DNA of 64,000 nt from Paragordius varius (taxonomy: Eukaryota; Animalia; Nematomorpha): contig OZ176055.1 in the NCBI GenBank assembly GCA_964247055.1, forward strand, positions 9,486,001 to 9,550,000, in the 5' to 3' direction. The translations under genes and the position numbers were made by a program. Every line of letters begins with the position of its first letter. The stretch's first letter is position 1. The notes beneath the pieces were generated by a model, which worked only from the letters and a program-made list of their open reading frames with translations, did not search any database and was not told the origin of the DNA. Of the stretch, positions 7,567 through 32,470 are shown in pieces.

Positions 7567-8337
7567 CAGAATCTATGAACTAAATCAGTGCTGCTCACTT
7601 AAATTTATTTTTTGCATTCAAGAGCCGTAAATAATACATAGAGCTAATTGACTCATATGCGAGTAAATATATTCTAAAATAGCAAGCCGCGATTTTTTCC
7701 GGGTAGCCTAAATATGGGAGCTAAAGTGCTTGTGCCTAGTCGTTTAATAAATAATAATTTACTATTAACATTTGTTTACAATAATATACATAAACAAATT
7801 TCAATATTAATCAATAATTTTGAATAATATGGTTAAAGATTAAGACAGGATTTACATACGTCGCCAATATGGGCATCTGTCAAGCAATTTGTATAAATTC
7901 TTTTTAAGCTTTCAGTTAAATAATAAAATATTCGACTATTCTTAATTTGCTATATCAAATTTTTAGTATAAAATGGATTAAGAGCCATTAGGCACTTTTA
8001 GGGAGACACGCGTCCGAGGGCCGCCGTTAAAGTACCTGGAACTATATTTTTTACTAATTTACCAACAAACCGTCGAAACCTAAGGGCAATGCGAGTCTTA
8101 ATCATACAAATGCTTAACTTGTTTAAAACCGTGGTAACTACAGGTTTCAAAACGGGGTGAATAGCATGATATTTTGCAAAATAATAATTTCGAATAAATT
8201 TTAATAATTGAATGGAAAAACATCGCAATTATTTTCATTTACGTAATACTATTTAGGGATTGAAAAAATAATTTAATGCAATTTTACTATTATTTTCTAC
8301 ACTTTTGCATTCATAGGCTTAATCATTTGAAAAATAT

Positions 8338-27700: not shown

Positions 27701-28311
27701 GTAACTATAATCACGGTCATAAACAATAGCTGAATCCAATGTTTCAGCATTGGCCTGAATAATTTGATATACAGAATGAGAGATCATAGGAGAAGGTAAA
27801 TTGTTTTTCGGATTTACATAATTGTACAAATCTGACATTGTTTCTACAAAGATATGAAAAAATATATAATAAACAACAAAGTTAATATAGCTTTTAAATC
27901 TAAATAATCGCTCAATTAAAAAGTAGTTTCAAAAAAATATTCGAAATTGTGGTATATAAAGTGGTTAAAATGCAATAAAATGAGTATGTTTTACGAGTAA
28001 AGCTTTTGTTAGTTTCCTTATGCAGATTTGATATGGCAATTCTCGCCGCTAAAATAGCATAATCTGGATGTTTGGTTGTCATGGTAGCGGCCGTTTCTGC
28101 AGCTAAATTATCCAATTCCATAGTTGTGACGCCTGGGTACAACCCATTAACCACTTTTTGGGTTATAAGGGAAGGAAAAAGATAATCCAAATCCAAACCA
28201 TAGCATAGCTTTGTTATCCGTGAGGTAATTTTATCAAACATGATGTCTTGTTGCAATCCATCTAAAAATCGGTTAAAAAATAGACAAAATACTTCGCTTG
28301 ATAACAAACAT
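18721..28311 (-). CDS. RRM1: Ribonucleoside-diphosphate reductase large subunit (class Ia), complete, 15 exons
   Basis: Exons (minus strand): 28311-28293, 28261-27995, 27843-27683, 27613-27411, 26826-26732, 26286-26156, 24640-24399, 23708-23566, 22933-22875, 22594-22430, 21552-21328, 20934-20716, 20328-20233, 19648-19460, 18999-18721. ATP cone [25 protein letters not shown], catalytic SNLCTEI and [28 protein letters not shown]-terminal CLMC shuttle cysteines. Confidence 0.96.
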
Positions 28312-28312
28312 A

Positions 28313-30139
28313 CAAGTAAACAAGTAAACAAGTAAAGGGTGTAGCGTCGGAAGATCGTCGGCCACCTGCCGTCAAGGCAATCCCTACCCACCCGTAATGC
28401 ATTGAGCTTCAGAGCGGGGAAACACATCGGAGGTTGGGGTTGACGTTAGTATCTACATACATAAATAAATGCCTTCATGTTAGATGTGTTAATGGGAGTT
28501 AGTATAGTTAATAAGCTATATATATATATATATATTTTAAAAGAAATGTTAATATCGCCTGGTTAGGTAGGTAAAAGCAATATTTAAGTTTAAATAACCG
28601 TACAAACAGGGTTTGATTATTCCAGAAAGTAATGTCAAAGGTCTATGTCGGGTCAAATGTAGAGTTAATTTTAAGCTCTTATCTTTGGTGTGGAAGAGGA
28701 TCTTCTTTTGCTTCTAAATGAGTGTGGCCTTTAGGTAAACCAATTTTGGAGATCTTAGACATTACAAGCGTCAACGTTACCCCTTCGTGCGACCATGTTT
28801 CAGTTGTACCTTCAACTGGGACGCTAACCCGGGATAAGTGGTCGTTGAGCTTGGTCTGAGCTAAGTCTCAACTCCGACCAACAGAGATGTCGGAGATTGG
28901 TAACCAGCCCTGCTCAAATATCAGCGGCTCCAACATTGCTTCCCAGGACGTCGTCCCACAATAATTGGCTAATAGTCTACTCAGAGTCGCGTCTTGCATG
29001 CTTTATACATTCAGTGGTACATTTTGTTCGTGGGATATCTGTGGGAAGCAGTCTATATTCTTAACTAACTGTATAGGTGTTTACCATTCACAGAGGGTGT
29101 TGTAAATATTACATGAATACTAACTGACTTTAACAGAGCGTTGTAAAATAAAAATTTATACCTTAAATACATGAATACTAACTGACATTAACAGAGCGTT
29201 GTAAAATAAAATTTATACCTTAATTACATATATACTAACTGACATTAACACAGCGTTGTAAAATAAAAATTTATAACTTAATTACATCAATACAGACATT
29301 AACAAAGCGTTGTAAAATAAAATTTATACCTTAATTACACCAATACTAACTGACATTAACAGAGCGTTGTAAAATAAAAATTTATAACTTAATTACATCA
29401 ATACAGACATTAACAAAGCGTTGTAAAATAAAAATTTATACCTTAATTACACCAATACTAACTGACATTAACAGAGCGTTGTAAAATAAAAATTTATACC
29501 TTAATTACACCAATACTAACTGACATTAACAGAGCGTTGTAAAATAAAAATTTATACCTTAATTACATCAATACTAACTGACATTAACAGAGCGTTGTAA
29601 AATAAAAATTTATACCTTAATTACACCAATACTAACTGACATTAACAGAGCGTTGTAAAATAAAAATTTATACCTTAATTACATCAATACTAACTGACAT
29701 TAACAGAGCGTTGTAAAATAAAATTTATACCTTATCCAGCAGTGGGAATTAACCTTAAAATACTACCGACTTCGCAATAGTACCATCCAATCTGGAGGAG
29801 CAAAGTATCCGGTTCAAAGAGAGTTGAATATTGGTAATCAGTCCTCAAATATCAGCGGTTCCGATGTCATCGTCATATAGCTGGGAAGTTTTGCGTGGGT
29901 TTCCAACGAGATAGGATTAGTAACTCCGGCGCGTTTTCTCGTTGAGCTTAAAAGTGATCGAGGTTTTCGGGGTATAATCGTAATCGCGTTCATCAGCGCA
30001 GCTTCAAAAGCTCAGTTGGCCACAGTTATTGAAGTTTCGGTAAATTTTAAAGATCGGAGTCATTAAATATTTACAGTCATTGTTCGATTCTAGCCTGGGG
30101 AGGATGTTGCGTCAGCCGGTGCCATACATCAAAAAGTCC
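28313..30139 (-). mobile_element. 1.83-kb GC-richer non-autonomous element with a central tandem array, directly against the RRM1 start codon
   Basis: Base composition shifts abruptly. (CAAGTAAA)3 at 28313-28336. TAACAAACATA occurs at both 28302-28312 and 30140-30150. Central 58-bp array. The class (retroposed element versus Helentron/DINE-1-like) and the right boundary are uncertain. Confidence 0.6.
29105..29733. repeat. Tandem array, 58-bp unit, 11 copies
   Basis: Unit TTAATTACATCAATACTAACTGACATTAACAGAGCGTTGTAAAATAAAAATTTATACC; GCGTTGTAAAA counted 11 times. Two shortened variant units (TACAGACATTAACAAAGCG) occur in a duplicated dimer. Confidence 0.97.
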
Positions 30140-30879
30140 TAACAAACATATCGGAGCTTGCCGCCTTTATAAGCGAATGAACCAAAGATGTATGATAATA
30201 TAAAAAGTGAGTGATAAATCACCATTATAATTTATTGGTATAAGAGTTTTAGTCAAGAAATAGCAAGAAAATAAATTAGGGTTTAATTGATTATATAGAA
30301 AAAAATTAGGGGACTAGATATAGCTGGTTTTGTGGATCTCAGTATACTGTAAAAAAAAACATTTTTTTTATTTATTTTATTTTTTTTATTTTGCAAAACA
30401 GCGTCTCACATCACCCACCATTGTAAGTTAGACAAAAATTGAAAATGAAGTTTCGCAGTGATTTGATTATAAAAAAACATTTTTATATAGCTTGAAGCCA
30501 AATTTAGGAAAGAGTAGATAGATATATCAGGATTATCATTGTGCTTTTGATTTTGGCCCTTACGAGTAAAGAAAAATTATTATCACATTTGTGGTAACTG
30601 CTCCAAATCGGAAAATGGCCAATATCCCGATATTTTATTTAAAAAATTTATTTAGTGAAAGCCAAATGCTTATTTCCAAAAAAATAGAGTAAAAGTAAAA
30701 CAGATTTTATAAAAATTTGGTTTTTTGTGAGCTCAGGAATTCTCGATTTTTTGCCAATTTAAAATAAATTAGTTTTGTAAAGCGCAAATATACTCAAACT
30801 GCCTAAATAAATTAAATTATATGCATTTAAATATCAATCAAAAATATTTTAAAAATAACATATTTTTAAATTAATTTTT

Positions 30880-32470
30880 AGCAAAATTTTGTTCCTACTT
30901 TATACGAAAAAGGGACAATAAAATGATCCATTTATGTGGATTATTTCGAAACATTTACGAATTTACCTTTTTATGGGTAATATTTAAAGCCTTTATTGAA
31001 CTCGTATGACTTCTTAAGTTTTTTAAAAATTAGCTCCAAAGCCACGCCATTTTTGTATGGCCCCTACCCATAGGCCTTTATAGAAAAGCGCTAAGTTAAA
31101 TTTTTGCCTTTTAGGGAAGTTTGGAATCATCAAGAGACTATCGTCTCATGAGTTATTCGAAAAAATACCTCAATACTAAATAATTGTTATATAGTGGCGT
31201 ATTTTTAGGGCCTAAAGGCCCCAAATTAACAGCTAATAAAAAAAGACCTGACCCTATATTTTTCCTAGTTACCGGTAATATTTCGAACTTTAAAGCCAAT
31301 GGCATAAGTTTTAAATTGTTCCAAAACAACGCAAGTTCTATATAGTGGCACAGTTTTCGGCGGGTAGCTTCTTACCCAGAGGCAGGGTTAAAAAAGCCTC
31401 GGGAAATATTTTTGTCTTTATGTGGGGAATATCTAGAATTATCATGGATTCCATATGTTATTATAAGTTCCTAGAATTATTGTTTCAAAACCAAAAAATT
31501 ATTCTATGGCGGTGAATATTTCAGGGCGTAAAACTTTTCTTAGCGACTCATTGATATAACCACCTATACTAAAATATTTTTTAGGGGTAATAAATATTTT
31601 AGGCCCTTATTGAACCCACATAGTCTCATAAGTTTTCTGAAATTTGGCTCCAAAGGCATGCTGTATCGATATAGTGACGCATTTTTACGCGGTTAGCCCC
31701 CTACCCAGAACCTATTTAACCGCTAATTTAAAAAAACCGCTCGACTTAAATTTTTGTCTTTTTACGGGTAATATTTCAAGCCCTTATAAAACTTATATGT
31801 CTTGATCTGAATTAACTCCTAAACAACGCAATTTTGGTATGGTGGCACAGTTTAAGGCGGGTAGCTCCCTACCAGAGGCCAATATAAAAACGACTTTTGA
31901 TAATATTTTTTTTCTTTATATGGGAATACCTGGAATCATCATTCAGTCCATATGCTCTAATAGTTTATGGAAGAATTGCTTCATAATTAAATAATAATTC
32001 AATGATACCGGATTTTTTAGGGCTGAAATGGCCTATCTAACCGCTAATTTAAAAAAACCGCTTGGCTAAATTTTTGCCTGTTAAAGGGAATACCTGAAAT
32101 CATGATTGATTCCATATGCTCTAATTAGTTTTTGGAAAATTGCCTCGAAATTTAAAAATTATTCTATGGCGGCGCATTTTTCAGGGCGTAAAGGGCCTAA
32201 TTAACGGCTAATTATAAAACATCGCATGATCCAAATTTTTGCCTTGTTGCGGGTAACATTTAAACAGCCATCGAACACATATGGCCTGCCCCAAAGGCAC
32301 GCTATTTCGATATGACGGGTCAGTTTTCAGCGCCTATATCCTTACCCAGCAGCTATAATCAAGGAAACGCTTAACTAAAATGTTTGCCTTTTAACAGGGA
32401 TTACCTGGAATCAATATTGAATTTTTACGGTCTCAACCTTGGGCGAAAAATAGTTTCAAAAATTTTTTTT
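30880..32470. repeat. Diverged satellite, units of about 150-170 bp, two interleaved subfamilies
   Basis: About 10 units, each starting AAATTTTTG(C/T)CTT..GGG.AAT. Type A carries TCCATATG..ATTCTATGGCGG..TTTCAGGGCGTAAA. Type B carries GCTCCAAA..GTGGCACAGTTT..GGGTAGC..CTACCCAGA. Confidence 0.7.

Follow-up and report, generated by a model that had tools for sequence, protein, structure and literature searches.

The window described here is the 64-kb stretch at positions 9,486,001 to 9,550,000 of contig OZ176055.1 of the nematomorph Paragordius varius, the genome of which is 110.6 Mb in size and strongly AT-rich (~25% GC). On its minus strand lies RRM1, the gene for the large subunit of ribonucleotide reductase, and directly in front of the RRM1 start codon there is an element of 1,827 bp (28313-30139). 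We assign a probability of about 0.88 to the interpretation that this element is a young, non-coding, non-autonomous copy of a retroposon of the type without long terminal repeats (a non-LTR retroposon), which arrived by target-primed reverse transcription onto the RRM1 ATG. The original prediction, made from this DNA alone, had proposed a 1.83-kb element on the RRM1 ATG with an 11-bp duplication that regenerates the ATG; this proposal was upheld, and the proposed ends independently match the ends of a repeat family.

The RRM1 gene and the duplication at its start codon

RRM1 exon 1 (28293-28311, minus strand) is 19 nt long and encodes MFVIKR plus the first base of an N codon. Intron 1 (28262-28292, minus strand, GT..AG) is just 31 nt long, yet the conserved N terminus depends on it, as it is needed for the in-frame join of exon 1 to exon 2 (27995-28261, minus strand, 3′ boundary approximate), which encodes the ATP-cone domain. 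Exon 2 matched positions 13-88 of profile PF03477 (E 6.6e-10) and residues 8-95 of the human RRM1 structure 3hnc (E 2e-38), and it was found that exon 1 gives exactly the seven residues preceding human RRM1 residue 8, with the pattern M-x-V-I-K-R conserved. Since the two exons together thus cover the protein from its first residue, the minus-strand ATG at 28311-28309 is, on this alignment, the true RRM1 start codon.

The RRM1 exons were examined one by one, each on its own. In a genome-wide search with PF02867, the sole matching locus was the one in the window, where eight pieces covered profile positions 2-516 apart from short gaps at 204-224 and 422-450. The layout is that of a class Ia ribonucleotide reductase large subunit, with the ATP-cone at the N terminus and the Ribonuc_red_lgC barrel after it. 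Because PF02867 matches this locus only, and over positions 2-516, RRM1 is, as judged by this profile, single-copy and looks intact. No second RRM1 copy or empty haplotig was found in the assembly, in which PF02867 matches one locus and the upstream flank is unique. When the open reading frame (ORF) that spans the gene-side junction (27912-28427, minus strand) was compared with a protein collection, the best match was 80% identical and no close relative was found; metagenome scans with exon 1 plus intron 1 and with the 3′ module of the element gave zero matches each.

The 11-mer TAACAAACATA (plus strand) is present at 28302-28312 and again at 30140-30150, and the two copies, which are identical to each other, bracket the element with no gap at either side. 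There is no third match in the window, for which the chance expectation was 0.25, and the probability that 11 of 11 positions match by chance at two fixed sites is ~3e-6, as computed for the local base composition. The element ends, when taken from 29 other near-full-length copies in the genome, fall at exactly 28313 and 30139 and so abut both 11-mers. The interval between them is richer in GC than the neighbouring DNA, and its sense strand is the minus strand of the window, which is the orientation of RRM1. The original prediction had placed the 11-mer at these two sites correctly, and correct, too, was its statement that (CAAGTAAA)3 abuts the gene-side 11-mer without a gap, at 28313-28336.

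On the minus strand, the gene-side copy, which is the downstream target-site duplication (28302-28312), reads T-ATG-TTT-GTT-A and holds the RRM1 start codon. The upstream target-site duplication (30140-30150, minus-strand TATGTTTGTTA) has its own ATG at 30149-30147, which opens a 6-codon upstream open reading frame (uORF), MFVRTF*, at 30149-30129 on the minus strand, with the stop located within the element. This uORF had been read correctly from the start, as had the CGGC-CACCT-GCCG stem near the other end of the element.

A reservation attached to the original prediction was that GC-rich sequence continues for about 40 bp past 30150, so that the 11-mer match might be due to chance. We found that no copy of the family extends beyond 30139 and that none contains the 11-mer internally, and that the sequence from 30140 to ~30906 has no second match anywhere in the assembly. 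Because no family copy enters 30140 and beyond and because the flank is unique, the 40 bp past 30150 are host DNA and the reservation falls away. This GC-richer patch (30151-30190, minus strand) is the DNA that formerly abutted the RRM1 ATG. It has a minus-strand TATAAAG at 30171-30165, 22 nt ahead of the upstream copy of the ATG, and the patch is probably a remnant of the native RRM1 core promoter or 5′ untranslated region (5′UTR). By-eye inspection of the patch for E2F-type and other promoter motifs was unconvincing, with TATAAAG as the only notable motif.

Farther upstream, at 30907-31132 (~750 bp from the insertion), there is a different, highly abundant short repeat, for which a first look gave 2,186 candidates, with matches of 77-98% identity on every contig. 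The stretch from 31 to 33 kb is also GC-richer and appears to be repeat-derived, and the next convincing upstream gene begins at ~36.9 kb.

The element family and its mode of insertion

In the sense orientation, the element begins with a 5′ part (positions 1-405; window 29735-30139, minus strand) that starts with GGACTTTTTGAT, which is the 5′ end seen most often among full-length copies of the family. This is followed by an internal tandem array of 11 units of 58 bp (29108-29734, minus strand; TRF score 1072, 92% matches), each unit of which contains TATAAAT and AAG|GTATAA in the sense orientation. The 11 units are the family maximum, with ~0-8 units elsewhere and total lengths of 1202-1663 nt. 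The 3′ part (sense 1033-1803; 28337-29107, minus strand) includes a conserved ~95-nt terminal module (28337 to ~28422), and the 3′ tail (28313-28336, minus strand) is (TTTACTTG)3 in the sense orientation, or three copies of CAAGTAAA on the plus strand; other copies have 1-3 octamers. An inverted partial copy of the core of the 58-bp unit (19-22 nt, 89-91% complementary) was also seen at 28487-28505.

The sense strand contains 37 ATGs and 28 runs of four or five T residues, including TTTTT at positions 5-9; AATAAA is absent from it. The last of the ATGs is at sense position 1738, and the final 89 nt are free of ATGs. In the 29 copies there was no open frame of more than 110 aa, no conserved frame, and no remnant of a reverse transcriptase (RT) or endonuclease (EN). 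ARAGORN found no tRNA in the element, no Rfam family matched at E ≤ 1, no terminal or subterminal inverted repeats join the element termini, and there are no direct terminal repeats besides the target duplication. The CGGC-CACCT-GCCG stem has only 4 bp; it is located ~22 nt inward of the tail-side end and ~46 nt away from the boundary of the element.

When the genome was searched with 28250-30250, 70 matches were obtained, which are 78-95% identical and spread over all large contigs. The genome contains at least 72 3′ ends that can be recognised as such, along with ~35 near-full-length copies; a 25-mer across the tail and the element end had 72 genomic matches at ≤2 mismatches, versus 0 for a reversed control. 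The tail-side end does not vary among the 29 other near-full-length copies, each of which has the same module followed by 1-3 octamers. The 5′ ends are ragged: they fall at sense position 1 (window 30139) in 11 copies, at position 10 in five and at other positions from 2 to 30 in the rest, and strongly truncated copies of 59-790 nt have 5′ ends at sense 1056-1761. Older relatives that are 75-81% identical (L037, L038 and L044) are likewise non-coding. The family is apparently undescribed, although its kind is already known.

Two further patterns were noticed among the truncated copies. Five independent insertions (L034, L035, L040, L041 and L043, each ~7906-8012) begin at one internal point, TTCCCCGCTCTGAAG..., ~95 nt ahead of the tail, and some of them have their own 9-11-bp duplications; this shared start may reflect a site of recurrent truncation or processing, or it could mark a separate ~100-nt mini-element derived from the 3′ module. 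Three identical tail-plus-module signatures at G000:C5:11201375, 11253745 and 11302307, on the same strand and ~50 kb apart, suggest a segmental tandem duplication containing a truncated copy.

Flanking direct repeats of 11-16 bp (median 14) were found in 22 of the 29 other near-full-length copies and in one truncated copy, which together with the window copy make 24 duplication loci. Often the duplication and the tail overlap, with 2-10 nt of microhomology. In the reconstructed targets, A or T is present at -1 in 21 of the 24 loci and T at +1 in 19, and the RRM1 site, GA|TATG, conforms to this pattern. At the 5′ junctions there is a single extra G in about eight copies, at differing 5′ end positions, and 14-45 nt of filler in a few. 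The combination of variable duplications, a fixed tail end, 5′ truncation and untemplated 5′-junction nucleotides supports insertion by target-primed reverse transcription and identifies the element as a non-autonomous non-LTR retroposon. Non-LTR retroposition had been one of two identities proposed at the outset, on the basis of the short-repeat tail and the target duplication, and it is the one that the 11-16-bp duplications, the variable octamer tail and the 5′ junctions of the family support.

An insertion of this kind at RRM1 would begin with a borrowed endonuclease of a long interspersed nuclear element (LINE), which would nick the bottom strand at GA|TATG, one base ahead of the RRM1 ATG. 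The nicked DNA would then prime cDNA synthesis on the (UUUACUUG)n tail of the element RNA, and a second nick 11 nt downstream would give rise to the duplication TATGTTTGTTA, leaving an intact ATG-TTT-GTT-A attached to the coding sequence. The extra G at the 5′ junctions of L1 and SVA elements is read as the reverse-transcribed cap. From the extra G at the 5′ junctions here, together with the T runs that would stop RNA polymerase III (pol III), we infer that the element RNA is a capped RNA polymerase II (pol II) transcript from an internal 5′ promoter. The architecture of the tail, by analogy, points to a CR1/L2-like LINE as the partner.

Age of the insertion and possible consequences for RRM1

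The divergence of the window copy from the family majority is 1.3% for the 3′ part and 4.6% for the 5′ part. Other copies, chiefly L026, share most of its variants, and only 5 of 1157 nt (0.43%) are private; the youngest copies of the family have 0.2-0.7% private divergence. Because this private divergence is low and the two duplication copies are identical, the RRM1 insertion is, by this measure, young and the family recently active. Over the ~225 nt that precede the tail (sense 1580-1803), the window copy does not differ from the family majority at any position, and its private changes all lie outside the ~750 nt of unique sequence nearest the tail. The window copy (L001) is a mosaic, the 5′ part of which is closest to L026 (2.3%) and the 3′ part to L002 (2.0%), a pattern that might reflect gene conversion or template switching between source copies.

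As a result of the insertion, a single host nucleotide (-1) is left in front of the RRM1 ATG, and the -3 position is changed from G to T. The original prediction had left three places for the RRM1 promoter, within the element, within the gene or at a distance of 1.8 kb, and as a reading of the sequence this conclusion stands. The displaced native promoter patch would now fire into the 5′ end of the element, and a read-through leader would contain 38 upstream ATGs, namely the 37 in the element and the duplicated upstream ATG, starting with MFVRTF*. The final 89 nt hold two AG dinucleotides, GGGTAG|G and GGCAG|G, and the array units offer the donor-like AAG|GTATAA; it is conceivable that most of the element is spliced away as a leader intron.

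Several outcomes for the RRM1 mRNA may be considered. We tentatively place foremost a functional 5′ end within the last 89 ATG-free nt, which would be provided either by a cryptic start site or by a splice acceptor with most of the element as the leader intron. It is also possible that the long read-through leader with its 38 upstream ATGs results in a weak and possibly still segregating allele. We consider it unlikely that the assembler picked a null allele that is present in the heterozygous state, and a different route, such as initiation at Met14, would be very surprising. It is rather doubtful that the insertion is fixed and tolerated because the retroposon supplies a working RRM1 5′ end; in the converse part of the same proposal, the displaced RRM1 promoter would drive the full-length element and might turn it into a source copy with strong expression.

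The mutation is of an ordinary kind, but the site that it hit is unusually delicate, and the interest of the event hinges on RNA and population data. It amounts to a natural experiment in which an essential, single-copy, cell-cycle-regulated gene was stripped of everything upstream of -1 while the coding sequence was untouched. If the element does supply the 5′ end, a young mobile element would have taken the place of the core promoter or 5′UTR of an essential S-phase gene, and if the allele is fixed and functional, it would show fast rebuilding of the 5′ end of a housekeeping gene from transposon sequence. If it is instead a segregating weak or null allele, it would mark an active retroposon family and a recent deleterious hit.

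Competing explanations and comparison with known elements

That the two 11-mers match by chance, that the repeat extends past 30150 or that the region is misassembled, such that no precise insertion at the ATG took place, was given some initial weight by the AT-rich genome, the A-rich 11-mer and the GC-richer DNA that continues for 40 bp past 30150. However, 30139 is the modal full-length end, shared with 11 other copies, none of which enters 30140 and beyond; the sequence from 30140 to ~30906 is unique in the genome, the 11-mer is present at the two junctions only, and the same architecture recurs at more than 20 other loci. We regard this explanation as barely credible. A Helentron-associated (DINE-1/HINE-like) rolling-circle element, with the 11-mer match being incidental, is nearly as hard to sustain. 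This was the other identity originally proposed, and the central array and the CGGC-CACCT-GCCG stem do recall the layout of HINEs (PMC4067079), but duplications of 11-16 bp flank 22 of the 29 other copies, the 5′ ends are ragged and carry filler, terminal and subterminal inverted repeats are absent, and the stem has 4 bp only, in a region that folds no better than shuffled sequences. The target duplications, the ragged 5′ ends and the missing inverted repeats thus refute the Helentron/DINE-1 proposal. An identity as a miniature inverted-repeat transposable element (MITE) was also ruled out.

The LINE-like tail and the duplications would also suit a truncated autonomous LINE or a classical pol III-transcribed short interspersed nuclear element (SINE) with a head derived from tRNA, 5S or 7SL, and a B-box-resembling GTTCGATTC is present near 30085 on the plus strand. 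This motif, however, is antisense relative to the tail, the ARAGORN and Rfam searches were blank, TTTTT at sense 5-9 is one of 28 runs of four or five T residues, and a length of 1.2-1.8 kb far exceeds that of a SINE. There is no RT or EN remnant or frame of more than 110 aa in the 29 copies, and the older subfamilies are non-coding too. We regard both of these identities as very unlikely.

Some of our results weigh against the interpretation of a young LINE-mobilised retroposon at the RRM1 ATG. The 11-bp duplication of the window copy, although of the same length as in four others, is among the shortest in the family. No autonomous partner was found: of 1,712 RVT_1 candidates 150 were scored, and no match among these is near any of the 72 tails; none of 20 extra tail-bearing loci (L031-L050) has an RT ORF beside the tail, and every exact double-octamer tail in the genome belongs to the element family. 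The 3′ module folds no better than shuffled sequence (z = -0.17), and a LINE-recognised stem-loop is thus not demonstrated. With regard to the new 5′ end of RRM1, the copy has no private change near the ATG that would point to adaptation, and nothing in the DNA indicates expression, fixation or homozygosity of the inserted allele.

A further pattern was noted among the RT-containing sequences: at G000:C2:1.86-3.16 Mb an intact open frame of 1,148-1,236 aa that contains an RT is repeated more than 30 times, with the copies ~14-30 kb apart and in blocks of both orientations. They have the appearance of an extensive array in which the composite unit carries a retroelement.

Four groups of described elements invite comparison with this family. 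The DINE-1 and Helentron-associated elements share with it a tandem array in the centre and a short stem close to one of the ends. Helentrons and HINEs do not duplicate their target, insert at T-rich or TT sites and possess subterminal inverted repeats of 13 bp (PMC4067079), and the family fails on all three counts: the TT preference, the duplication-free insertion and the 13-bp subterminal repeats. SVA and LAVA are composites with a variable number of tandem repeats (VNTR) that are mobilised in trans by a LINE (PMC7353768), and, like the family described here, they are non-coding, are 1-2 kb or more in length and have a central tandem domain that varies in length. They differ in their poly(A) end, their SINE-R and Alu parts and the type of LINE partner, and, as there is no sequence kinship, the resemblance is a functional analogy only.

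The short internally deleted elements (SIDEs), among them Persaeus/Zenon, Ag-Sponge and TbRIME, are LINE derivatives which the family resembles in concept; they are non-autonomous non-LTR elements that have no pol III head and are mobilised in trans via a shared 3′ end (PMC6740152). The family shares with them the lack of a pol III RNA-gene head and, presumably, LINE-like transcription and mobilisation in trans. SIDEs are defined, however, by both ends being collinear with a parent LINE, none of which was identified here, and the family is longer and has the variable 58-bp array.

The architecture of the 3′ end resembles that of the CR1/L2 group. CR1 has no poly(A) and ends in 2-4 copies of an 8-bp repeat, which in chicken is ATTCTRTG (PMC2734521). 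The octamer differs here (TTTACTTG), the element is non-coding and has no protein to place on a tree, and no CR1-like RT partner was found. In common with CR1/L2, however, the family lacks poly(A), has 1-3 8-bp units right after a conserved 3′ module, and shows 5′ truncation and variable duplications. The family may be regarded as an example, in a poorly studied AT-rich animal genome, of a pol II-type, non-coding parasite of LINEs that combines a CR1-like octamer tail with a variable array.

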